Sequence record: NC_023568.1
Length of the DNA: 64,000 nt
Reading direction: 5' to 3' (one strand)
Made by a program: the position numbers and the translations under genes. Each line of letters begins with the position of its first letter. The stretch's first letter is position 1. Positions 41,601-57,010 of the stretch are shown piece after piece. The notes beneath the pieces are model-generated. The model had not been told where the DNA came from. It made no database searches and was given only the letters and a program-made list of their open reading frames with translations.

Positions 41601-42125
41601 CTATTTGCGCCCTTTTGTTTTTTGTTTCTTTGCTTTTCGTTTAGCCCGTCTAAGTTCTTTTCGTTTAGCGATTTTATCTGCTCTTCGAACTGCGTCATAA
41701 TCAGCAGCACAAGACGCAGCAAACGCATCAGGTTTGAACACGGGCTCTTGACCAACATATCCCATGATCGTGCCTTTAGCTTCGTTATAGGCAACGTGAG
41801 ATTTGTGTGTAGGGTCAGGGTTGATGTCAACGTGAACTTCAAAGCCTCTAGTACCGCACATTGGCTTAACCATTAGTGCAGTTTCACCCGCTTTGTATAC
41901 TTCATTCATCAATCGACTTCTGATACCATCTTTACATGATAAGTATGCAGGTTCAGTCTCAACTGCTTTAAACACTTGAGCACCTTTACTACCTTCAAGA
42001 TGAATTATGATCACAGTCGCGTAACTAATCATGTCACTTTTACGCTTACTATCACACCCAACGTATATTGTGCTATTTGGATGACTGTTATTGATAGCTG
42101 TTTCTATCGCTTCCCAATCGAACAT
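41601..42125 (-). CDS. RNase H-like YkuK-family protein
   Basis: IYVGCDS, RLMNEV, EVHVDIN, ASCAAD motifs. Confidence 0.75.
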   Translation of the reverse strand: MFDWEAIETAINNSHPNSTIYVGCDSKRKSDMISYATVIIIHLEGSKGAQVFKAVETEPAYLSCKDGIRSRLMNEVYKAGETALMVKPMCGTRGFEVHVDINPDPTHKSHVAYNEAKGTIMGYVGQEPVFKPDAFAASCAADYDAVRRADKIAKRKELRRAKRKAKKQKTKGRK

Positions 42126-42138
42126 TTTCACCTCTTAC

Positions 42139-42174: not shown

Positions 42175-43611
42175 TTAAAAGCTGTAGCGTTCGACGCCTA
42201 CAGTTTTCATCATGATCTTGATTGGCTCAAGCTCACCACCCAACAGTGAAGTCAAGATAGATGGGCTACAACCAGATACCAGTGCAGTACCCGCTTCACC
42301 AGCTTTAACCGGAACGTTGCCAAGACGACCACGAATGTTCCAGAAGACCAGTTGTGGCATTTCATAACCAGCACGTGCGTACATGGCTTTGATTGCATCG
42401 AAGTTCGCAGGTTCACCGCGACCGTACCAGCCACCGCCAGTGTTTGCTTGATCGAATTCCATGTCACTCATGATAAGCAACTTGGTTGGCATATCTTCTT
42501 GTGAAAGATTTGCACGCTTCGCACGCTCTAGCAGAACATCAAAGCACTTACCGATGTTCGTACTCATGTCTTCGCCTGAACGATTCATGTTATCAAGACG
42601 CTCTTTCAATGAGCTACCGCGCAACTGGTGGAAGTGCGGGTCGCTTGAGAACGAAATGAATTGATCTTTGAAGATGCCTTCATTGCGTTCAGCAACATAA
42701 ATCCCAAGAGACATTGCAACTTGCTTACAAGTCACACCTGAATGGTCTGTACCTGCGTTGATTGGCGTGCTCATAGAGCCAGACACGTCAACAACAGGGA
42801 TGATGCGCTCATCAGAACCTTCCATGTAGTTTGGCAGAGCTTTCCATTGCTCGTTCGCTACAGACGCATTACCGTGACTAACGCTCTTAACGACATCGTA
42901 TGGGAACAATGCGCCAGCGTTGATCTTCGCTTCACCTTTTTGAAGTGACTCGATGTAGCTTGTGTAACGAGCTGAAGCGTTACGACCGAATGCTTGTTGA
43001 TAACGAGCAGACGCTACAGAAGGCAATTTACCGAAGTCGATTGCATCCCATTCCTGAGCACACATTTTCTGTTCAACAGTGTCAGACAGAAGAGAAAGAA
43101 TCTTACGCCACTGCTTCGCAGTTACACCAAGAGACTTGATTGTGCGCTTGAATACGTGACCGTTTTTGCTGTTCTCGCGTGGGAACCACTTCGCAGCAAG
43201 ACCGTTCTTGTCGTTTACAATCGCGTTTGACCACATAGTGATCGCGTCTTTTTCTAGACTTGTGCCGAAAGCAGAAATCAAGTCATCGAAACGACCTAGT
43301 TCTGGAATTTTCGACATTACAGCACGAGCTACGTCAGGCTGCTCATTACAAAGTTTAGCGAAAATAGTACGGAAAGTACCACGTTCACCCGCACCACCGC
43401 GAACGTCACGAGACCATAGCAAGATGCGTGTCGCAAGTTCTGGGTTTTCTGCAAACGCACGACCGAACAGTGTTTTAGACTGATCGTTGCCACGCATAGC
43501 AGCAATACCGAAGAACAAGTTTAGACACTCGTTACCTGAAGTGCTGTGAGTAACTGCACCGTTTACTGTGCGTGAATCGTTTGTTTGCATTGCGTTCATA
43601 AATACTGACAT
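42175..43611 (-). CDS. Ro60-like TROVE/vWA protein (DUF2828 type)
   Basis: RDVRGGAGER, AAKWFPRE helical region; MIDAS VVDVSGSM, MSDMEFD, LVFWN. Confidence 0.8.
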   Translation of the reverse strand: MSVFMNAMQTNDSRTVNGAVTHSTSGNECLNLFFGIAAMRGNDQSKTLFGRAFAENPELATRILLWSRDVRGGAGERGTFRTIFAKLCNEQPDVARAVMSKIPELGRFDDLISAFGTSLEKDAITMWSNAIVNDKNGLAAKWFPRENSKNGHVFKRTIKSLGVTAKQWRKILSLLSDTVEQKMCAQEWDAIDFGKLPSVASARYQQAFGRNASARYTSYIESLQKGEAKINAGALFPYDVVKSVSHGNASVANEQWKALPNYMEGSDERIIPVVDVSGSMSTPINAGTDHSGVTCKQVAMSLGIYVAERNEGIFKDQFISFSSDPHFHQLRGSSLKERLDNMNRSGEDMSTNIGKCFDVLLERAKRANLSQEDMPTKLLIMSDMEFDQANTGGGWYGRGEPANFDAIKAMYARAGYEMPQLVFWNIRGRLGNVPVKAGEAGTALVSGCSPSILTSLLGGELEPIKIMMKTVGVERYSF

Positions 43612-48503: not shown

Positions 48504-48748
48504 AGACATTCGAGAAGTGTTTTATCGTCTTTCCTTAAATCTCATTTGACTATAACGATGTTTCTCATCGGAAAAATACTCATGATTCGGCATGAGTCCT
48601 ATTTCGTTTGACAGTACGAACACCGTCTTAATGGTCATTTCCTACCACGAGAATGCGACAGGCTCACGTCATCACTGAGAAAGCAGCTAGTGCGCCTCAT
48701 TACTATTAAAGTTTGCTTTGATTTTGTAATGATTGCTGTACAATGTCT
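48504..48748 (-). ncRNA. 245-nt structured RNA closed by the AG-N8-CAGCA module (Y-RNA-like, long type)
   Basis: AGACATT/AATGTCT terminal helix, about six internal hairpins, 3' motif shared with 50505-50733. Confidence 0.75.
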
Positions 48749-48759
48749 TATTGCGAATT

Positions 48760-48848
48760 TGGCGGAAGCACTGGGAATCGAACCCAGAGAACGCTATTAA
48801 CGTCCGACACCTTAGCAGGGTGCTGTCATACCTTTAGACCATGCTTCC
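48760..48848 (-). tRNA. tRNA-Ser(GCT)
   Basis: cloverleaf, loop CTGCTAA, long variable arm, CCA. Confidence 0.93.
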
Positions 48849-48887
48849 AACGTCTCATCAATTAATGGCATGCTGCTCTCATGCTCA

Positions 48888-48921
48888 GACACATATTTGC
48901 TCTTATTGCTGACGTGTGCCA
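48888..48921 (-). ncRNA. minimal copy of the helix-CAGCA module
   Basis: TGGCACA-CGT-CAGCAAT...TGTGTC. Confidence 0.5.
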
Positions 48922-49016
48922 CGCGCTTCGCAGATCCACTTTAGATAATTTAAAGACCTAGCGGGACTCTTAGCAGGTCTATCCACTCTCTTTCGATTCG
49001 CGTTGCTAAGTGAATT

Positions 49017-49093
49017 TGGTGCCCAACCCGAGATTCGAACTCGGAACTCCTAGTGTTTGAAACTAGTGCCTCTGCCAATTGGACTAGTTGGGC
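49017..49093 (-). tRNA. tRNA-Leu(CAA)
   Basis: loop TTCAAAC, short variable region, CCA. Confidence 0.9.
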
Positions 49094-49104
49094 TTGAATA
49101 AACT

Positions 49105-49196
49105 GCCGCGACTCTTTAATCCCTAACACCTGTCAGCTTTCGCTCGGCTGAGACCGTTTTTCAACGGCGGTAGTCTAGCTTCGTATAGAACGCGGC
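49105..49196 (-). ncRNA. structured RNA with GAAA tetraloops
   Basis: GCCGCG/CGCGGC closing stem; CCGTT-GAAA-AACGG; TCAGC/GCTGA. Confidence 0.55.
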
Positions 49197-49209
49197 TTAT
49201 GCTAGAATT

Positions 49210-49286
49210 TGGTACGCACGGGCGGATTCGAACCGCCATCCCTGAGATTTTAAGCCTCATGCCTCTGCCAATTGGACCACGTGCGC
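49210..49286 (-). tRNA. tRNA-Leu(TAA)
   Basis: loop CTTAAAA, CCA. Confidence 0.92.
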
Positions 49287-49288
49287 AT

Positions 49289-49362
49289 TGGAGCTCGAAC
49301 AGGGAATCGAACCCTGACCTGCGGATTTGCAATCCGTCATACTTCCATTATACGATTCGAGC
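49289..49362 (-). tRNA. tRNA-Cys(GCA)
   Basis: loop TTGCAAA, U73, CCA. Confidence 0.92.
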
Positions 49363-49374
49363 ATAAATGTACTT

Positions 49375-49451
49375 TGGGGTGACAGACGGGGATCGAACCC
49401 GCATCTTCCGGAATCACAACCCGGGGGTATTTCCACTTCACCCACTGCCAC
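49375..49451 (-). tRNA. tRNA-His(GTG)
   Basis: loop TTGTGAT, C73, CCA; -1 base is T. Confidence 0.9.
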
Positions 49452-49577
49452 ACCAAAGTACACTTAAAAGTTTGCATTATGTCTTGGAGAAATAGATAAA
49501 TCTACTAGCAACACCGCCGTCGCTACCTGCAATACTTTGGGATGTTTACGACATCAAACGAATGCACTTCCTGTGCA

Positions 49578-49829
49578 TTAATCAGATTTATTTAAGTAGA
49601 TTCTATCAGGCGATAGTTCTCTTGTAAACATATTTCTGAAATAAATTTCGATATCTGCTTCAGTTGTTGAAGACTCAATTTCAAGAGCACGCTCAAGAAC
49701 ACGCTCAAGAATCTTGTTACGCTTAAACCCAGCGCGCCAACAGTCAAACATAAGTCTGTCCATTTGATTTAGCTTTTCGATTTGATTCGGGTTTACGTAT
49801 TCATGAGTTTCAAGTAATACAGGCGTCAT
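49578..49829 (-). CDS. hypothetical protein within tRNA cluster
   Basis: GAG RBS; ORF track. Confidence 0.7.
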   Translation of the reverse strand: MTPVLLETHEYVNPNQIEKLNQMDRLMFDCWRAGFKRNKILERVLERALEIESSTTEADIEIYFRNMFTRELSPDRIYLNKSD

Positions 49830-49852
49830 AATTTATTTCTCATCATAAAGAA

Positions 49853-49926
49853 TGGTAGTCCCTAGTGGAATCGAGCCACTTCTTTCTCTGTGTAAAAGAG
49901 ACGTACTTCCATTATACTAAGGGACC
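49853..49926 (-). tRNA. tRNA-Val(TAC)
   Basis: loop TTTACAC, T-loop CTCGATT, CCA. Confidence 0.9.
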
Positions 49927-49932
49927 AAAATT

Positions 49933-50006
49933 TGGAGCGGGTACACGGACTCGAACCGAGACGAACGACTTGGAAGGACGTCATGCTACCATTACATCAT
50001 ACCCGC
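49933..50006 (-). tRNA. tRNA-Gly(TCC)
   Basis: loop CTTCCAA, U73, CCA. Confidence 0.92.
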
Positions 50007-50195
50007 ATTGTTAATCTGAAGCGTCGAACAAATCACGTATTGCACGTAGATTCGTAAGCTCTACAGTAAGTGTTCTTATAAAGAACGGGTTGGTCTCATT
50101 CGCGAGACATTTTTCAACATATCGAATTTTATCGCGTATGTTGCCCTTGCTTAGTGTAAAGTAGTCATGCTTCGTAACCTCTTTGTTTTTGAATT

Positions 50196-50271
50196 TGGAG
50201 GTGACACCGATACTCGAAATCGGATCTTACGCCGTATGAAAGCGTTGCTCTGCCACTTGAGCTACATCACC
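50196..50271 (-). tRNA. tRNA with CAT anticodon (Met or Ile2)
   Basis: loop TTCATAC, CCA; identity ambiguous. Confidence 0.8.
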
Positions 50272-50273
50272 AA

Positions 50274-50500
50274 TTGCAGTAATTAACTCATTTAATCGCA
50301 CACTGGCTGACACCATATATTCATGGTCTGAGTGAGGAACCACATAGTGGGTACTGTTACCTCTGCTTAGTTTTGATTGTTTTACATGACGATGACTAGA
50401 AACGTTCATAATAATGCCACGCGATACATCCTATATCGCTGCTAACATCTAAGTTAGCGTATCTTGCCTTTCGGCTACAGTGTCGTTTCCGACGAATTAA
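50274..50500 (-). ncRNA. about 225-nt multi-hairpin RNA
   Basis: GTCG-GAAA-CGAC, GCC-GAAA-GGC, GCTAAC/GTTAGC, ACACTG/CAGTGT helices; ends TTACTGCAA. Confidence 0.55.
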
Positions 50501-50504
50501 GTAC

Positions 50505-50733
50505 AGACAATACCGAAGTGTTTTTTTCGTCTTTTGCATAAATCGGAGTTGACTAGCTTATTGATTCTCAACAAGCAAATATCGTCTGTTTCAGCGACGC
50601 GCCTATCTGACTATTTCTAGACAGAGAGAATCTTTCCTTTCAAGCTGCGCCTAAGCAAGCTCAGGTTAAAATCAGCCCAGGTTAAGATCATCACTTCTTT
50701 TAAGTAATTTCAATTGTTTGCTGTATATTGTCT
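50505..50733 (-). ncRNA. 229-nt structured RNA closed by the AG-N8-CAGCA module (Y-RNA-like, long type)
   Basis: AGACAATA/TATTGTCT terminal helix; AAAGACGA...AAAACACTTC 3' motif. Confidence 0.75.
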
Positions 50734-50796
50734 CTCTCACCATGCTCGTGATATGCCGAAGCAAAGTATCATTCGTCGCATGATAAGAGCTTAATA

Positions 50797-50872
50797 TGGC
50801 ACGCCGTATGAGATTCGAACTCATAACCCCATCCTTAGAAGGGACGTGCTCTTCCAATTGAGCTAACAGCGC
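50797..50872 (-). tRNA. tRNA-Arg(TCT)
   Basis: loop CTTCTAA, CCA. Confidence 0.92.
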
Positions 50873-50946
50873 ATTGAAAAGATTCGAACCATGAACTAGT
50901 GTAGACGATGGTAGTAAAGAGAGTCTACGCTCATGTGTTCGAAATT

Positions 50947-51021
50947 TGGTGGACACGCAGGGAGTCGAACCCTATCTTCCTCATTGCAAGTGAGGCGCTT
51001 TCCCAATTAAGCTAACGGCCC
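50947..51021 (-). tRNA. tRNA-Ala(TGC), irregular acceptor stem
   Basis: loop CTTGCAA, G3.U70 present, lower acceptor mispaired or bulged. Confidence 0.8.
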
Positions 51022-51028
51022 ATATTTT

Positions 51029-51238
51029 TTACAACTGTGTGATTGAAATATATTCCCAACCGTATAAACCTTCAAGTTCTTCAATCGGCTCACTAACAAT
51101 GTCAGAAATATATTCAGCAACTTTTGCTTCAACTTCTTCATTAGATAATTCTTCACTAACGGAAAAAACATCTTCGTTATTGTTGCCACCGAAATCCCCA
51201 CCAATGTCATATTCACACCATACAGAAATATAGTTCAT
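51029..51238 (-). CDS. small acidic hypothetical protein
   Basis: GAG RBS before ATG 51238. Confidence 0.65.
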   Translation of the reverse strand: MNYISVWCEYDIGGDFGGNNNEDVFSVSEELSNEEVEAKVAEYISDIVSEPIEELEGLYGWEYISITQL

Positions 51239-51262
51239 GTTATTCTCGCAGTTGTTTGAAAA

Positions 51263-51338
51263 TGGTGCCCTGACACGGATTCGAACCGCGAACCTGCTCA
51301 TTACAAGTGAGCTGCACTGCCAGTTGTGCTATCAGGGC
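51263..51338 (-). tRNA. tRNA-Thr(TGT)
   Basis: loop CTTGTAA, CCA. Confidence 0.93.
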
Positions 51339-51344
51339 GTTACT

Positions 51345-51457
51345 GAGTGTTATTACTAGCGTCGTCCAGACCAGTGATACCAACACTGAAAGGGAATCGA
51401 ACCCTAAACATTTCTTTCCGATAAGAATATTAGTAAATTGTTTGCTGAAAACACTCT
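51345..51457 (-). ncRNA. YrlA-like circularly permuted tRNA mimic with the module
   Basis: GAGTGTT/AACACTC end helix; order T arm (TTCGATT), capped acceptor-like stem, GG-containing D-like loop. Confidence 0.75.
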
Positions 51458-51465
51458 TCGGTATT

Positions 51466-51539
51466 TGGCTGGGGATAACAGATTCGAACTGATACCAACG
51501 CATTCAAAGTACGTTATGCTGCCTTTACACCAATCCCCA
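51466..51539 (-). tRNA. tRNA-Gln(TTG)
   Basis: U1-A72, loop CTTTGAA, CCA. Confidence 0.93.
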
Positions 51540-51558
51540 ATTGTTCTTAAATTATCTT

Positions 51559-51634
51559 TGGCGGAACCGACGGGTTTCGAACCCGCTACCTTCTCCGTGA
51601 CAGGGAGACATGCAACCACTTACACCTCGGCTCC
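51559..51634 (-). tRNA. tRNA-Asp(GTC)
   Basis: loop CTGTCAC, G73, CCA. Confidence 0.93.
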
Positions 51635-51704
51635 CCAAAGACAACTTAAAGTAGTTGCTTTGTTTTTTTCAAGTTCACACTTAACGGTAGTGACTCTCCG
51701 AATT

Positions 51705-51780
51705 TGGCGGACCGCCCGAGACTCGAACTCGGAACTCCTCGCTTAACAGGCGAGCACTCTAACCATTGAGTTAGCGATCC
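51705..51780 (-). tRNA. tRNA-Asn(GTT)
   Basis: loop CTGTTAA, G73, CCA. Confidence 0.93.
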
Positions 51781-51792
51781 TAAAATTTAAAC

Positions 51793-51850
51793 AGTAATCC
51801 TTTTTGCTTTTTCCAAATAAAAGTTTTGTATTGTTTGCTGTAAGATTACT
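51793..51850 (-). ncRNA. 58-nt end-closed RNA with the module
   Basis: AGTAATC/GATTACT helix then TTA-CAGCAAA. Confidence 0.7.
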
Positions 51851-51855
51851 TAAAC

Positions 51856-51929
51856 TGGCAGGGGCATAGAGATTCGAACTCTAACGAACGGGTTTGGAAT
51901 CCGTCATGCTGCCTTTACATCATGCCCCT
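51856..51929 (-). tRNA. tRNA-Trp(CCA)
   Basis: loop TTCCAAA, CCA. Confidence 0.92.
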
Positions 51930-51935
51930 AAAATT

Positions 51936-52009
51936 TGGTAGTCCCTAAGAGAATCGAACTCTTACCAAGCGATTATCGGTCGCACGCTCTACCGTTGAGC
52001 TAAGGGACT
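51936..52009 (-). tRNA. tRNA-Ile(GAT)
   Basis: loop CCGATAA (C33), CCA. Confidence 0.88.
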
Positions 52010-52072
52010 AAAGTGTGCGCATTTCAGCGCACTGTTAATCGGTTAAGTGACTAAACTTCCCGGTTAACTAAT

Positions 52073-52171
52073 TGGCGGAAGACTAGGGATTCGAACCCTA
52101 ACATCACCTCCCGGTGACCGACGGTTTTCAAGACCGTTGCCGCTACCCAGAATCTTTCGGCTAAGCCTTCC
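52073..52171 (-). tRNA. tRNA-Ser(TGA), enlarged D-loop
   Basis: loop CTTGAAA, long variable arm, 15-nt D-loop, CCA. Confidence 0.85.
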
Positions 52172-52178
52172 ATTAATT

Positions 52179-52255
52179 TGGTTGCGTGGGGCTGGATTCG
52201 AACCAGCGTTCTCCGGCTTATGAGACCGACGAGATGACCACTTCTCTACCCCGCA
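52179..52255 (-). tRNA. initiator-like tRNA-Met(CAT) with bulged acceptor stem
   Basis: resembles fMet tRNA (GCGGGG...CTCATAA...GCAACCA); one extra A in 3' strand. Confidence 0.8.
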
Positions 52256-52265
52256 ATTATTCAAC

Positions 52266-52352
52266 AGCTTGCGTTCTTTGGTCTGTTTATCGCTGTCTGA
52301 ACTGAGTTCGTCGAGCGATCAATAGAGTAAGTTAAATTGCAGTATGCAAGCT
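52266..52352 (-). ncRNA. 87-nt end-closed RNA with the module
   Basis: AGCTTGC/GCAAGCT helix then ATA-CTGCAAT; internal ATCGCT/AGCGAT stem. Confidence 0.72.
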
Positions 52353-52357
52353 AAAAC

Positions 52358-52443
52358 TGGTGGAGCGTAGAGGAATCGAACCTCTCTACCCGTTAAGGGT
52401 CAGGGATTTACAGTCCCCTGTCTCACCTTGAGACGTACGCTCC
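52358..52443 (-). tRNA. tRNA-Tyr(GTA)
   Basis: loop CTGTAAA, long variable arm, CCA. Confidence 0.93.
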
Positions 52444-52449
52444 AGAATA

Positions 52450-52524
52450 TGGTTCTCCCGACGAGATTCGAACTCGCGCACTTCACCTTGAAAGGGTGAT
52501 GACCTACCGTTAGTCCACGGGAGA
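52450..52524 (-). tRNA. tRNA-Glu(TTC)
   Basis: loop CTTTCAA, CCA. Confidence 0.92.
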
Positions 52525-52587
52525 ATTAAATTGTATATTGATTTGCAAGCTATCTAACTTGCAAAGCGATACACAATGTATCTAATT

Positions 52588-52664
52588 TGGTACGCCGCTC
52601 TGGACTCGAACCAGACACCTGAGAGTTAAAAGCTCCCTGCTCTTCCATGATGAGCTACCGACGC
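52588..52664 (-). tRNA. tRNA-Lys(TTT) copy 1
   Basis: loop CTTTTAA, CCA. Confidence 0.88.
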
Positions 52665-52675
52665 ATTATAAAATC

Positions 52676-52749
52676 TGGTGGGTCCACAGAGATTCGAACT
52701 CTGACTGAAGGATTAAAAGTCCCATATGCTACCATTACATCATAGACCC
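52676..52749 (-). tRNA. tRNA-Lys(TTT) copy 2 (different body)
   Basis: loop CTTTTAA, CCA. Confidence 0.88.
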
Positions 52750-52837
52750 AATTTGATTTTCACGTTAAGAGCGTTTGCTAAATAACTCAAAACTAAAACC
52801 CCTTGCTTGATTTAACTCTTACAAACAAGCTATAATA

Positions 52838-52912
52838 TGGTGCACCCCCTCGGAATCGAACCGAGCACTGCGGGACTTCAATCCGCCGCTTTTCCTGATA
52901 AGCTAAGGGTGC
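52838..52912 (-). tRNA. tRNA-Phe(GAA)
   Basis: loop TTGAAGT, CCA. Confidence 0.88.
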
Positions 52913-52913
52913 T

Positions 52914-52990
52914 TGGTACGCAAGAAGAGATTCGAACTCTTAACTTCTGGTTTCTAAGACCAGTGCCTCTGCCAATTGGGCTACTTGCGC
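52914..52990 (-). tRNA. tRNA-Leu(TAG)
   Basis: loop CTTAGAA, CCA. Confidence 0.92.
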
Positions 52991-53009
52991 ATTAAATTTT
53001 GTAAACTTC

Positions 53010-53138
53010 TTTTCTTCATTGTACATGATGTTTATATCGTTGTAAACATCTTTTTTGAAAAACTTTTCATTCGATTTTGAATGATAATTCGCTTTTCTTC
53101 ATTGTACATGATGTTTATATCGTTGTAAACATCTTTTT
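53010..53138 (-). promoter_or_regulatory. tandem identical 46-bp promoters for tRNA genes
   Basis: 53010-53055 = 53093-53138; TTTACA-17-TACAAT with internal GATGTTTA/TAAACATC inverted repeat. Confidence 0.8.
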
Positions 53139-53344
53139 GATTTTTTTTTTGAAGAACTTAACGTTTTCATTTTCTATGTGTTAATATTAACACTCGCTCA
53201 AGACATCATAAACACTAATTCATGAAAAGTTCGTTAAATTCTATCATCTCGACAGTACTTAACGAGATACGGTCCTAAGCGTATCAATTCGTAGAAGCAG
53301 TTTCGGGAATGTGCGAAAGCGAGCTTCAATCAAACAACACTAAC

Positions 53345-53420
53345 TGGCACCCAATACAAGATTCGAACTTGTAACCTTCGCCTTCGTAGGGCGCTGCTCT
53401 TCCAATTGAGCTAATCGGGC
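53345..53420 (-). tRNA. tRNA-Arg(ACG)
   Basis: loop CTACGAA, CCA. Confidence 0.92.
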
Positions 53421-53427
53421 ATTAAAC

Positions 53428-53504
53428 TGGTCCGTGACAAGCGATTCGAACGCTTAACTTCTCCGCCCCAAACGGAGTACTCTACCAGATTGAGCTAGTC
53501 ACGG
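53428..53504 (-). tRNA. tRNA-Pro(TGG) copy 1
   Basis: C1-G72, loop TTTGGGG, CCA. Confidence 0.92.
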
Positions 53505-53513
53505 ATTTTAAAT

Positions 53514-53587
53514 TGGTCGGGACGAAGAGACTCGAACTCTTACCACATGCTCCCAAAGCATGAACGCTACCTTTACGCCACGTCCCG
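53514..53587 (-). tRNA. tRNA-Pro(TGG) copy 2
   Basis: C1-G72, loop TTTGGGA, CCA. Confidence 0.92.
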
Positions 53588-53664
53588 TTTGTTCTTTAAC
53601 TTTGTTTATCATACTCTGTAATCAAAGTACGTTAAACAAAATTTCTTAACTTTCTTACGCCCAT

Positions 53665-53688
53665 AAAAAAGGACGCTATTTGCGTCCT
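53665..53688 (-). terminator. rho-independent terminator
   Basis: GGACGC aaata GCGTCC + T6 on - strand. Confidence 0.8.
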
Positions 53689-53717
53689 CAAGTATACTTC
53701 TATGTTATACTATCGGA

Positions 53718-53831
53718 CTACAAGAGGGTATCCCACTTCTGGTTCGCAATCGGATTCGCTAGATACACGAATTCTGAGCGCAGAAAATCGCTGCGTAATG
53801 TCTCAGATGAATGTGTAAACGAATGCGTCAT
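53718..53831 (-). CDS. 37-aa small ORF, absent from the ORF track
   Basis: AAGAGAG RBS; MTHSFTHSSETLRSDF...WDTLL; own terminator downstream. Confidence 0.45.
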   Translation of the reverse strand: MTHSFTHSSETLRSDFLRSEFVYLANPIANQKWDTLL

Positions 53832-53958
53832 TGAATGCTCTCTTGAAATAAAAATTAAAATTTGTTTTGTTTCTTTATAGTACTTATAACACTAAATCTG
53901 ACGATTTGCGGTATTTTCGCAGAAAATTGAAAAAAATTATCAATTTTCTGCGATTTTA

Positions 53959-54195
53959 TTAACCTAAGTGTTTTCGCTTGTTCATTTCAGCAAGAATTTC
54001 GTCGTTGTAGTGCTTATTAAGCTCAACGAATTTCTTGTGCTGATCTGAAGTCAATTCGTTTGTATCGTTCAGATGCTTCAAAAACCCAAGAGGCTTACGA
54101 AACGACTTGCGATATTCATTCAGACGCTCATCTGTTAGATTGCGCAATTGTTTCGGAGTCAGTAACGTTTTGTTGATATTAAATGTTCCGCTCAT
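53959..54195 (-). CDS. hypothetical protein
   Basis: GAGGT RBS before ATG 54195. Confidence 0.7.
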   Translation of the reverse strand: MSGTFNINKTLLTPKQLRNLTDERLNEYRKSFRKPLGFLKHLNDTNELTSDQHKKFVELNKHYNDEILAEMNKRKHLG

Positions 54196-54221
54196 GTTAT
54201 ACCTCACTAGTTTATCAAAAA

Positions 54222-54337
54222 TGGTAGTCGGGGCTGGATTCGAACCAGCGACCACGTGCTTAACAGGCAATTGAAGGAGTGCTGGAGCGATACTTGTCAG
54301 TATCATTCTTCGTGCTCTACCACTGAGCTACCCGACT
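54222..54337 (-). ncRNA. tRNA body (Asn-like loop retained) with the module inserted in the anticodon arm
   Basis: AGTCGGG/CCCGACT, D and T arms, ACCA; insert GATACT-GACA-AGTATC-GCTC-CAGCA. Confidence 0.8.
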
Positions 54338-54342
54338 ATGAA

Positions 54343-54864
54343 TTATTTAACTTTGAATTTCAAATTTCGATATTCAAAGTTTCGTTTGTCTTTTTTACTG
54401 TAATACGTATCCCAATCAATAGAAACAGGACAGTTCTTACTACCCACACGAGATAAGAAAACGTCGTGAGTGTCTTTGTAAGCTTCTCTGAGAGACTTTA
54501 CTTGTTTCTCATGATGAGTTATGTACTCAGCACACGCTTTGTTGTACTCAGCTTTAGAGAAGCGGTCATCGCCCGTGAAATTACCGTTTAGATACGGTCG
54601 AATAACACGAACACGCTCTTTAGACCATCCCATACTAAAACTATTTTCAATTCGACCGATGATTTCACCAGTCTTTTTACATCGTGCAAGAATAACCCAG
54701 CAACGCTCTCTTCGAAAGTCTTTTCGAGTGAATACATTGATGTACTTATCAACATACTCTTGATAGCGTTCGTTATATATTTTACGAAGTCTGCTACGTT
54801 CTTCAATCGTCATAGCAGCACGTTCTTCTTTAGAGAACGCCTCAACGAACTTCAATGGTTTCAT
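54343..54864 (-). CDS. hypothetical protein
   Basis: GAGG RBS before ATG 54864. Confidence 0.7.
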   Translation of the reverse strand: MKPLKFVEAFSKEERAAMTIEERSRLRKIYNERYQEYVDKYINVFTRKDFRRERCWVILARCKKTGEIIGRIENSFSMGWSKERVRVIRPYLNGNFTGDDRFSKAEYNKACAEYITHHEKQVKSLREAYKDTHDVFLSRVGSKNCPVSIDWDTYYSKKDKRNFEYRNLKFKVK

Positions 54865-54877
54865 TATAATTTCCTCT

Positions 54878-54974
54878 TGGCGCCGCTCGTGTGAATCGAA
54901 CACACGTCAAACACAACACCTCTTCAACCCAATTAGAGTTTCGAAGTAAGAGCTAATCAGCATTTCAGAGCAGC
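54878..54974 (-). ncRNA. tRNA-like RNA with CCA and non-canonical D/anticodon region
   Basis: GCTGCTC/GAGCGGC acceptor, GTGTG-TTCGATT-CACAC T arm, GCCA end. Confidence 0.65.
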
Positions 54975-55121
54975 CGAGCGTTATTTCTACATACAAGACT
55001 TCGACATCTCACATGCACTTTCTACTCGGTCCCAGTGATTCGGTACCAACGTAGGTTGCGAACCTACGTCTGCACTAATGTTGGGAATACACTGTGTATT
55101 GTACGCCAGTTAGCGGCATTT

Positions 55122-55352
55122 TTAAAGATAGCTGTCAAAAACATCATCACTGACTTCTTCAATCTTGATGTCAGCGTAACATTCGTTCGCAACTGCTCGA
55201 ATTTCATCTATTGAAACTGTACCCGAGTACAAAACAACAGAGTCGTTCGGAATCACAACATCACACATGTATCTGTCAAACATTTCAGTTCTGAAATCGT
55301 AATCGACGTAGCAAGCGTGCATTGATGTGATAACTAGCAATTTATGTGACAT
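55122..55352 (-). CDS. hypothetical early protein
   Basis: TTGACA-17-TAGTAT promoter at about 55383-55411; GAGG RBS. Confidence 0.7.
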   Translation of the reverse strand: MSHKLLVITSMHACYVDYDFRTEMFDRYMCDVVIPNDSVVLYSGTVSIDEIRAVANECYADIKIEEVSDDVFDSYL

Positions 55353-55431
55353 AATGTTTTCCTCGTGTAGTTGATAATGTGTATACTACACGTTGATGAA
55401 ACGTCTGTCAACAACTTTTTTCAATTTATTT

Positions 55432-55509
55432 TGGTGACCCCAACAGGACTCGAACCTGTAACCTACCGATTATGAGTCGGTTGCTCTAACCGTGTTGAGC
55501 TATAGGGCC
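55432..55509 (-). tRNA. tRNA with CAT anticodon (Ile2- or Met-like)
   Basis: GGCCCTA acceptor, loop CTCATAA, CCA. Confidence 0.88.
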
Positions 55510-55510
55510 A

Positions 55511-55879
55511 TCATTTCTCTAGAAATCGACCAACTTTCGCAGCGAAGATGTTTGCTTCTTCTGTAATACGAGCAGTCGATTTAATTTGATGAAATGCGTC
55601 TTGTTGATGCAGCAAATCGAGCTTATCTGCACATTTCATCAATTCTTTTATAGTTTGCATAATCTCAATATTATCAATCTGACTTGTATCAGGGTGATAA
55701 TTTAGATTGTCTAATATCGGCAGAACTTGTTGATAGCAACCCATGCCAATGAAGTTTATCATAAGTCTATACTGCATTTCAACAGCAAATGTACAATATT
55801 TTCGAAGATTGCGCTTTACAATCTCACAACGATGCAATATACAATCAAGTTCGTCATTTATGTCATTAAACTTATTCAT
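55511..55879 (-). CDS. hypothetical protein
   Basis: GAGGG RBS before ATG 55879. Confidence 0.7.
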   Translation of the reverse strand: MNKFNDINDELDCILHRCEIVKRNLRKYCTFAVEMQYRLMINFIGMGCYQQVLPILDNLNYHPDTSQIDNIEIMQTIKELMKCADKLDLLHQQDAFHQIKSTARITEEANIFAAKVGRFLEK

Positions 55880-55893
55880 AAACCCTCGAAAAT

Positions 55894-56017
55894 TGGTGGA
55901 GAGTACGGGATTTGAACCACGTGACAAAAAGATTTACCTAGTTATTAAGGTTGCAGCATGAATGCTTGTCAGTATTCTTTAACATTCTTTTGCTCTACCA
56001 GACTGAGCTAACTCTCC
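55894..56017 (-). ncRNA. tRNA body with the module replacing the anticodon loop
   Basis: GGAGAGT/ACTCTCC, ACCA; GAATACT-GACA-AGCATTC-ATG-CTGCAA. Confidence 0.8.
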
Positions 56018-56024
56018 AGAATTT

Positions 56025-56140
56025 GAAGGTGAAGTGCAGGACTCGAACCTGCGACCTCCGGCGTGCATGTGAATGCAGAATGAAATCTTATCAGACTTCG
56101 TTTTTTGGCCGGCGTTCTAACCTACTGAACTAACTTCACC
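56025..56140 (-). ncRNA. Asp-like tRNA body with the module replacing the anticodon loop
   Basis: GGTGAAGT/ACTTCACC, CCGGC/GCCGG stem; GAAGTCT-GATA-AGATTTC-ATT-CTGCA; no CCA. Confidence 0.78.
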
Positions 56141-56150
56141 AATGTAAAAA

Positions 56151-56287
56151 CATATTGAGCAGGGTGCAGGATTCGAACCTGCGTCACGATCTTGGAAATG
56201 ATATGCTAAATTGATTGCAGAATACAAACTTAACAGCTTGCGTTTATGCTACGTGTGCTAGCCACTACACCAACCCTGCTCAATATG
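56151..56287 (-). ncRNA. Gly-like tRNA body with the module, inside a 15-bp terminal stem
   Basis: GCAAGCT-GTTA-AGTTTGT-ATT-CTGCAA; residual TTTCCAA; T arm GCAGG-TTCGAAT-CCTGC. Confidence 0.78.
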
Positions 56288-56330
56288 TTCTTGAGAGTGC
56301 TTGTGATTAACCACAAGCACCAAAAATCCT

Positions 56331-56519
56331 CTAGTTATATTTGCCTTAGCTAATCAAAACACAATCTGGAATCGTGCGCTTTAATTACGGGATGAATGAC
56401 CCGTTCGCATGTGATTAGCGCAAAAGTATGAATGCGCACCTTTTCTTCTTCAATGTCCAAGGCAAAAAGGACGATGAATACTAGTGCGAGAAGATATACA
56501 ATCAAATTGTCCACCTCGC
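56331..56519 (-). ncRNA. multi-helix structured RNA
   Basis: TTTGCCTT/AAGGCAAA, CTAATCA/TGATTAG, ACGGG/CCCGT, GCGAG/CTCGC pairings. Confidence 0.5.
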
Positions 56520-56528
56520 TTTGTTAGT

Positions 56529-56675
56529 GAGAGTACATTGGTCGAGTGTAACGGAATCGAACCGTTCCCACGATCTCCCTATGATATGCGTAAATTGGTT
56601 GCTGAATATAATCATGTCTGATTACAGTATGCTACGTGTGCTGCCACTACACCAACACTCGACCAATGTACTCTC
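56529..56675 (-). ncRNA. tRNA body with the module, inside a 21-bp terminal stem
   Basis: CGAGTGT/ACACTCG + ACCA; TGTAATCA-GACA-TGATTAT-ATT-CAGCAA; paralogue of 56151-56287. Confidence 0.8.
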
Positions 56676-56676
56676 G

Positions 56677-56758
56677 ATATTTTAAATGTGCGCTACTTGC
56701 ACGCCAGAACGTATACTGGCTCCATGTATTCATTGCGGCTAACGCACATTTAAAATAT
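56677..56758 (-). ncRNA. long-stem RNA
   Basis: 16-bp ATATTTTAAATGTGCG inverted repeat enclosing a GCCAG/CTGGC hairpin. Confidence 0.5.
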
Positions 56759-56760
56759 TA

Positions 56761-56864
56761 CTCATCTTCAGAGAAGAGGCAGAAACGATGAGTTTAGTCT
56801 GCTTAATCAATATTGTTCATCTTCAATAAGAGGCGAGAACGATGAACTTAGCTCGCTTAATCAA
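56761..56864 (-). repeat. two tandem H-type pseudoknot units (55-nt period)
   Basis: five compensatory base-pair changes between copies. Confidence 0.8.
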
Positions 56865-56872
56865 CTGTGTTA

Positions 56873-56993
56873 ATCTTAACATCATTTCAGTGTAAGTCAA
56901 CAACTTTTTTCAAATATTTCATCGAGTTGAAAGTTTGTGTTCTGTCTCTCGACTCGATGAAATACATTCTACATGCTTTTCAGAATAAGTCAA
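56873..56993 (-). promoter_or_regulatory. two early-type promoters heading the tRNA/ncRNA operon
   Basis: AAAGTTGTTGACT...TG.TAAGAT and AAAGTTGTTGACT...TG.TAGAAT; 13-bp leader hairpin between them. Confidence 0.75.
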
Positions 56994-57010
56994 CAACTTT
57001 TTGAAAGTTT

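Follow-up and report, generated by a model that had tools for sequence, protein, structure and literature searches.

Two small RNAs in the tRNA operon of a KVP40-like vibriophage are putative Y-RNA-like partners of a Ro60-like phage protein

Are the conserved spacers in a phage tRNA array genes in their own right and, if so, what could they serve? We addressed this question for a stretch of 64,000 nucleotides from sequence record NC_023568.1 (hereafter the window), which corresponds to bases 62001-126000 of a 246,964-base virus record. From 50000 to 57000 the window matches Vibrio phage VH7D without a difference and shares 86-99% identity with other KVP40-like phages, and about 30 tRNA genes were located by ARAGORN and Rfam on its minus strand at 48760-56139. 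Two of the spacers hold the elements studied here, element A between tRNA-Tyr and tRNA-Met and element B between tRNA-Trp and tRNA-Asn. The analysis revealed that A and B genuinely belong to an RNA family tied to a Ro60-like phage protein. Sequence comparison and a structural model further suggest that they are probably small noncoding RNAs from the tRNA operon that carry a module bound by this protein, and thus its putative Y-RNA-like partners. The features on which this reading is based are the following:

52263-52354, minus strand: element A, a small RNA of about 87-92 nucleotides (nt) between tRNA-Tyr and tRNA-Met (core as first described, 52266-52352)
52346-52352, minus strand: 5' strand of the A closing helix, AGCUUGC, pairing with 52266-52272 over 7 base pairs (bp)
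52336-52345, minus strand: A spacer AUA and CUGCAAU motif (DNA ATACTGCAAT), without variation within the genus
52289-52319, minus strand: A inner hairpin, with a 6-bp stem, a conserved internal loop and a 4-bp apical stem
52263-52272, minus strand: 3' strand of the A closing helix, GCAAGCU, with a GUU tail, giving the RNA end ...CUGUU
51791-51852, minus strand: element B, a small RNA of about 58-62 nt, UAAG-UAAUC-UUA-CAGCAAACAAU...GAUUACUGU, between tRNA-Trp and tRNA-Asn
51835-51843, minus strand: B spacer UUA and CAGCAA, the latter found in 45-46 of 46 distinct family members
51807-51823, minus strand: B small hairpin, CUUUU-AUUUGGA-AAAAG, present as sequence and showing no covariation
42175-43611, minus strand: gene for a protein of 478 amino acids with DUF2828 and DUF7788 (Pfam E 1.5e-28 and 6.7e-46), the proposed partner

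Read on the minus strand, B is AGUAAUC-UUA-CAGCAAACAAU...GAUUACU-GU, in which a 7-bp end helix closes the core at 51793-51850. For comparison with related phages, the array was taken from 13 records and the tRNAs were mapped in the first ten. The sequences of A and B were kept in 10-13 related phages despite altered neighbours. Seven phages have a Trp-Asn spacer of 74-76 nt; a further four carry a 62-codon open reading frame (ORF) or an HNH endonuclease gene between tRNA-Trp and B, and keep B before tRNA-Asn. In the same four phages the B helix reads AGCAAUC...GAUUGCU in place of AGUAAUC...GAUUACU, which is a compensatory change. RNAalifold analysis of 14 sequences showed compensation at six of the seven pairs of the closing helix, the only structure that it found. 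When 46 distinct sequences of the B-type family were compared, all seven pairs covaried and 98% of cells were paired, against 67% in shuffles. The termini of the family were similarly constrained, with the first G present in 43 of the 46 members, its partner C in 44 and the G after the helix in all of them.

Element A starts 5 nt past the CCA of tRNA-Tyr and ends 9-11 nt ahead of tRNA-Met. It was found in 30 KVP40-like phage records and is annotated as RNA in none. An alignment of its ten distinct variants showed that the closing helix and both junction strands are invariant and that three of the four pairs of the apical stem are altered on both sides, indicating covariation. The whole inner hairpin is swapped for an unrelated 10-bp hairpin in TCU-VP03 and QD01, with identical flanks. 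The Tyr-Met spacer is 98-102 nt long in most relatives and 295-565 nt in some; A is kept directly after tRNA-Tyr in these longer spacers, and the extra 200-465 nt comes after it. A hypothetical protein of 36 codons is annotated across A in Vibrio phage CZ01 (L136, 4426-4536).

The link between these RNAs and a protein gene was examined in 80 phage contigs that were fetched by protein alignment alone and whose DUF2828 relatives are 47-55% identical. In this set, CWGCAANCAAT occurs 15 times on the gene strand, compared with 2.0 expected, and three times on the other strand, compared with 1.6 expected. At 44 of 67 non-redundant loci the first 150 nt past the stop codon contain CWGCAA on the gene's strand, compared with 7.4% of control windows. 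At most of the 44 loci the motif comes with a closing helix of 6-8 bp and a spacer of 3 nt, and this layout (helix, 3 nt, CWGCAA) is also that of A. At many loci the RNA lies 25-40 nt past the gene and aligns base for base to the B motif, UUA-CAGCAAACAAUAC, while its helix strands are others (AGGUUCC, AGAUUCC or GGGUUAU). A covariance model of B built from 14 sequences (R1; cut-off E<0.01) yielded 41 further matches, all of them downstream of a DUF2828 gene on its strand and 32 within 500 nt; in the VH7D genome, B itself is the sole strong match (73 bits, E 1.9e-17). An unspecific scan that looked, after CWGCAA, for any closing helix of 7 bp gave a background of 15-24% for control motifs too, and because of this high background the position test and the covariance model were used instead. 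The link to the Ro60-like protein gene had been missed in the preliminary description of this DNA.

Two further arrangements were seen in these contigs. In many uncultured phages (L055, L059, L063, L066 and others), two tandem RNAs lie 25-200 nt past the DUF2828 gene: an RNA of about 60 nt of the B type is followed immediately by a longer RNA that starts with GGAUCG-GUA-CAGCAAAAAGUAC. In L082, L091, L092 and L098, the RNA after the DUF2828 gene (GGAAUGAU-UA-CUGCAAAG...) has a T-arm-like GGUUCAAACC hairpin, which suggests that tRNA-mimicking cargo also occurs outside Vibrio phages.

The product of 42175-43611 has more than 7000 relatives, mostly in phages and metagenome contigs, and an Atlas look-up of this protein returned its own family only. 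Its Pfam families are DUF2828 and DUF7788, and TROVE is not assigned. The AlphaFold model, which was built on 24 sequences with a mean predicted local distance difference test (pLDDT) score of 77, was compared with the PDB using Foldseek. Among the matches listed, all 11 with E<0.001 were Ro60/TROVE proteins aligned over the full length (E 1.9e-8 to 1.3e-5, template modelling (TM) score about 0.5, identity 12-16%), namely chains of Thermus phage phiLo Ro60, Deinococcus Rsr, Xenopus Ro and human Ro60. Ro60 combines a ring of HEAT repeats with a von Willebrand A-type domain. The next-best matches were von Willebrand A (vWA) domains alone, and an invariant D275-x-S277-x-S279 in the C-terminal half fits the vWA metal-site motif. 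As the best listed matches are all Ro60/TROVE and a vWA-type motif is present, the modelled protein is Ro60-like, at the level of fold only. The gene directly downstream of it (41601-42131, minus strand) encodes a product assigned to Pfam RNaseH_like (PF04308, E 2.3e-17).

Within the window, CWGCA(A) following a helix strand and 2-4 nt was found about 12 times on the minus strand. These sites are A, B, 51345-51457, two longer RNAs near 48738 and 50723, 50279, the leader of the gene at 43611 and the interior of five tRNA-like genes at 54225-56670. Two of them are central to what follows:

51345-51457, minus strand: sister free-standing RNA, GAGUGUU-UU-CAGCAAACAAU...AACACUC, with T-arm-like cargo
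56214-56244, minus strand: capped copy of the A helix and motif, AAC-GCAAGCU-GUUA-AGUUUGU-AUU-CUGCAAU (DNA AACGCAAGCTGTTAAGTTTGTATTCTGCAAT), inside the tRNA-like gene 56151-56287

The preliminary description had regarded both spacers as end-closed modules, and this is borne out: each has a 7-bp end helix, and both are conserved, discrete elements of one family. It had also pointed to small hairpins in B and in 51345-51457, and both sequences are indeed present; that of the sister RNA, TTCTT-ATCGGA-AAGAA, stands at the equivalent distance after CAGCAAACAAT and keeps its stem, with loops of 6-8 nt that vary in sequence. The suggestion that the B loop resembles an anticodon loop is not supported. 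The stem CUUUU/AAAAG is invariant in the genus and never covaries, the loop drifts between AUUUGGA, AUUUUGA and AUUUUAA, and the hairpin is absent both from distant homologues and from the minimum-energy fold.

The relationship between A and the tRNA-like gene at 56151-56287 was evaluated by joining the last 28 bases of A to its first 32 and aligning the product to that gene. The joined sequence gave a contiguous local alignment to the embedded module, with identity in 27 of 31 columns and a single gap of 1 nt. Its score of 40 was reached by none of 5000 shuffles, whereas A in its native order matched one half only, with a score of 26. At the three differing positions of the 5' strand a C is replaced by U, with pairing preserved as G-U, and in phage V09 the embedded copy has GCAAACU, so that a G-U pair becomes A-U. 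The match exceeds what shared constraint would account for, as identity extends to five inner pairs and to the AAC preceding the helix. The claim that the two loci share their strands in permuted order is thereby confirmed. Its further reading as direct evidence of circular permutation stands for the topology of the module, which is permuted, and is not supported for the RNA itself: the permutation is one of gene and module and does not demonstrate an RNA circle.

In the free RNAs the helix is open, starting with (A)AG and ending with CUGU(U), whereas in the embedded copies it is capped. The caps at 56151-56287, 56028 and 54225 have the form C-UGNNAA-G, with UGUUAA, UGAUAA, UGACAA and UGUCAA among phages. 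Joining the termini of the free RNAs (AAG... and ...CUGU(U)) generates the CUGNNAAG loop that caps the embedded helices, and for A, CUGUU joined to AAG equals the capped loop CUGUUAAG of the embedded copies. The copy at 55897 can form the same cap only with an A-C or U-C mismatch in the stem, and alternatively a perfect 5-bp stem with an 18-nt loop; the fifth copy, at 56540-56670, has a GACA tetraloop as its cap. Because the flanking bases are kept whether the helix end is open or capped, they would be part of the recognised element, and because the tRNA-like genes at 54225-56670 carry the module in capped form, the module exists in two permuted topologies. The 56151-type gene was present in 4 of 14 genomes examined, and A in all 14 and in all 30 matching records. 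The simplest account is that the embedded copy arose by copying of an A-like sequence into a tRNA-like scaffold, a direction that we infer.

The tRNA-like genes 56540-56670 and 56151-56287 (both minus strand) have a common scaffold, GGUGUAGUGGC..AGCACACGUAGCAUA ... GCAUAUCAU..AGAUCGUG, and differ mainly in the capped helix; neither was called by the Rfam tRNA model at its threshold. Homology between the B helix and the capped helix at 56540-56670 was considered and rejected (alignment score 17): with respect to the motif the two strands stand in the opposite order there, and the likeness is one of composition.

The sub-cluster from tRNA-Leu to tRNA-Thr, which holds A and B, is preceded by a feature of its own:

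53018-53129, minus strand: two promoter-like sites, TTTACA-17-TACAAT, each on one copy of a direct repeat of about 83 nt, upstream of the sub-cluster

No terminator-like site was detected on the minus strand from tRNA-Leu (52990) to tRNA-Thr (51263) when 51263-52990 was scanned. The idea that A or B is itself a terminator or promoter was rejected, as no such sites occur at either element. In seawater RNA libraries, contigs of a ValKK3-like phage span both A and B, which lends weak support to the present reading; these contigs have no power for ends, strand or level and were therefore taken as presence only.

Other spacers of the array also contain structure. The Glu-Lys spacer (52525-52587, minus strand) forms a strong hairpin (z -4.7) whose core strands GCAAG and GCUUGC are those of the A closing helix in capped order, with CWGCAA absent after them; it is 63-64 nt long in 8 of 11 mapped genomes and 107 or 156 nt in the other three, and could be a decayed module or a processing site. 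The Ile-Ser spacer (52010-52072, minus strand) has two stable hairpins (z -4.6) and measures 62-64 nt in all related phages mapped. The Lys-Phe spacer (52750-52837, minus strand) is a variable insert, 88 nt long in VH7D, Va3 and nt-1 and 6 nt in most other relatives. The QD01 and CZ01 records annotate many tiny ORFs over the tRNA array, and these are probably over-calls.

Based on these observations, we propose a model in which A and B would be transcribed in the tRNA operon and freed when the flanking tRNAs are processed. RNase P, cutting where the following tRNA begins, would leave 9-12 nt beyond CUGU, which exonucleases would trim, and about 5 nt would remain ahead of (A)AG once the 3' end of the tRNA upstream has been processed. 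The docking module would comprise the 6-7 bp end helix with its (A)AG start and CUG(U) end, the 3-nt spacer and the single-stranded CWGCAA, and the protein most likely to bind it is the DUF2828/DUF7788 product of 42175-43611. B would then be the bare module with an A-rich loop, the counterpart of the small RNA found directly after the gene in other phages, and A would be the module with an exchangeable hairpin as cargo. By analogy with Ro60 and Y RNA, the particle may gate or tether RNA surveillance or repair during infection.

Other explanations of the two elements have to be weighed against this model. A and B might be processing punctuation, hairpins that help host RNases to part the tRNAs and that yield no functional stable RNA. 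Their location in a tRNA operon, with tRNA ends only a few nucleotides away, would fit, as would the strong, motif-less hairpins at 52010-52072 and 52525-52587 and the ordinary folding energies of A and B. Yet the unpaired motif is better conserved than the helices, the same RNA follows the protein gene in phage contigs where no tRNA adjoins it, and the RNAs persist where an ORF replaces a flanking tRNA, and we consider this explanation unlikely. A partly covalently closed state, produced by a phage RNA ligase and leaving the embedded copies as descendants of circles, has in its favour that the ends meet at the helix and that the joined termini reproduce the capped loop. KVP40-type phages encode RNA ligases, and the record of one relative annotates such a gene just beyond the array. 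This is nonetheless very unlikely: no read crosses the joined junction, the RNA-library sequences being contigs only, DNA-level rearrangement or gene conversion suffices for the permuted order, and the Class I RNAs of Dictyostelium, which would be homologues, are linear with defined ends (PMC7919456).

A role as anticodon-loop decoys, or as decayed tRNA remnants that distract anticodon nucleases, is the least credible of these ideas and close to negligible. It draws on the 7-nt loop that B carries on a 5-bp A/U stem, on the similar hairpin in 51345-51457 and on the presence of a tRNA array in a phage facing tRNA-cutting defences; against it stand the drifting loop, the lack of covariation and the missing hairpin in distant homologues, and no tRNA features were detected in the A or B spacer by ARAGORN, run with and without introns, or by the Rfam tRNA model. 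There is a modest, rather low probability that A and B are genuine family RNAs with a different partner, such as an RNA-binding protein of host or phage, of the RRM or another type, or a base-paired RNA target, the Ro60-like gene being a mere neighbour. Gene neighbourhood is indeed no proof of binding, but the linkage to DUF2828 is tight and strand-specific across proteins that are only 47-55% identical, and small RNAs encoded next to the gene are established partners of Ro60 proteins (PMC12135203).

Several observations weigh against Y-RNA-like partnership with the Ro60-like protein. Y-like RNAs lie beside the gene, whereas in VH7D A and B sit in the tRNA array, 8-9 kb from the Ro60-like gene and not adjoining it. 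Canonical Y RNAs present a bulged helix, or CGAA in phage Yrl, where A and B have a helix and CWGCAA, and in Dictyostelium direct binding to a Class I RNA has been demonstrated for one protein only, which is of the RRM type and not Ro60-like (PMC7919456). The closing helix of A never varies, so pairing there is supported by sequence alone, and the CZ01 variant has an A-A mismatch in the inner stem. In one scan of the IMG/VR collection with an exact 16-mer, no homologue of A outside the genus was found: the 44 loci retrieved contained KVP40 as the sole true copy, the others being an unrelated coding gene or chance. The single-sequence folding energies of A and B are ordinary (z -1.0 and -0.7), the seawater evidence consists of contigs only, with DNA carry-over possible, and both the RNA ends and the binding of protein are what we infer.

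On this reading, spacers of a well-known phage group, KVP40 and its relatives, become genes. The helix, 3 nt and CWGCAA that A and B have in common with the sister RNAs would form a compact handle for a large, functionally uncharacterised protein family, RNA and protein would make a testable pair, and the comparison of open and capped topologies reveals the nucleotides of that handle and thus a minimal candidate binding site.

Three groups of known RNAs invite comparison. Phage T4 produces stable RNAs C and D (species 1 and 2), which are small, of unknown function, encoded in the tRNA cluster and released together with the tRNAs. By description, they are like A and B in being small RNAs within the tRNA cluster of a T4-type phage; neither a DUF2828 gene nor a CWGCAA-type motif is known from T4. 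A functional parallel is offered by Thermus phage phiLo, whose Ro60 binds the phage-encoded Y-like RNAs Yrl1 and Yrl2 (PMC12135203). Y RNA, YrlA, YrlB and Yrl all use paired ends as a protein handle, and A and B would follow the same plan. Y-like RNAs are encoded beside a gene for a Ro60-type ring protein, often in multiple copies, with and without a tRNA-like domain, and the same is true of the present family, in which B resembles the short, cargo-less type. The partner of Y RNAs belongs to Pfam TROVE, whereas the proposed partner gene here is DUF2828/DUF7788. Rfam gave no match to YrlA or Y RNA at the positions of A and B; a few weak ones to YrlA span the junctions of neighbouring tRNAs and were rejected.

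The Class I RNAs of Dictyostelium are defined by a short covarying stem that joins the ends and by an 11-nt motif next to its 5' strand; they start with AAG, end with CUGU with G-C pairing, have a median length of about 60 nt and are reported to be absent outside Dictyostelia (PMC7919456). A preprint on a DdR-21 pull-down names four proteins, including DDB_G0281243 of unknown function. Neither A nor B has a match at the Rfam gathering threshold, and A has none below it. The only sub-threshold match to either element is RF01414, which aligns to the full length of B with 31.8 bits, where gathering requires 41.5; a distant homologue has 28.2 bits and none of ten loci reaches gathering. The alignment shows the same plan in both: stem, CUUACAGCAA, A/U-rich loop, stem and UG. 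At 10 consecutive positions B agrees with the Rfam consensus CUUACAGCAA, and the AUACUGCAAU of A agrees, by our count, at 8 of 10.

The comparison extends to further features. After the 5' strand the Rfam motif consensus is CUUACAGCAAU, and B likewise has (C)UUACAGCAAA. Class I RNAs and B share an end-joining stem that covaries, whereas the 7-bp helix of A is present but invariant. The termini AAG...CUGU recur in genomic B as AAG...CUGU and in genomic A as UAG...CUGU; Class I RNAs are 42-65 nt long, B 58-62 nt and A 87-92 nt; and both Class I RNAs and B have a variable A/U-rich loop and low GC content. B thus fits each of the published points of sequence and structure and A all but length and one motif position, A being unlike it in having CUGCAA for CAGCAA, a length of about 90 nt and no Rfam match. 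The settings differ: Class I RNAs are amoebal with their own Dictyostelium upstream sequence element (DUSE) promoter, whereas A and B belong to a phage and lie inside a tRNA operon with sigma-70-like sites upstream. We tentatively raise the possibility, though it is rather doubtful, that the phage RNAs and the Class I RNAs form one family whose ancestral partner was the DUF2828 Ro60-like protein; the amoebal RNAs, so far reported from social amoebae alone and with no mechanism assigned, would then belong to a Ro-type particle as its Y-RNA-like part, whether it was taken over from phages or bacteria or is held in common with them. DDB_G0281243 is a concrete lead for this possibility. If the resemblance does reflect common descent, a 20-year-old question about the role of the Class I RNAs becomes testable in a simple phage-bacterium system.

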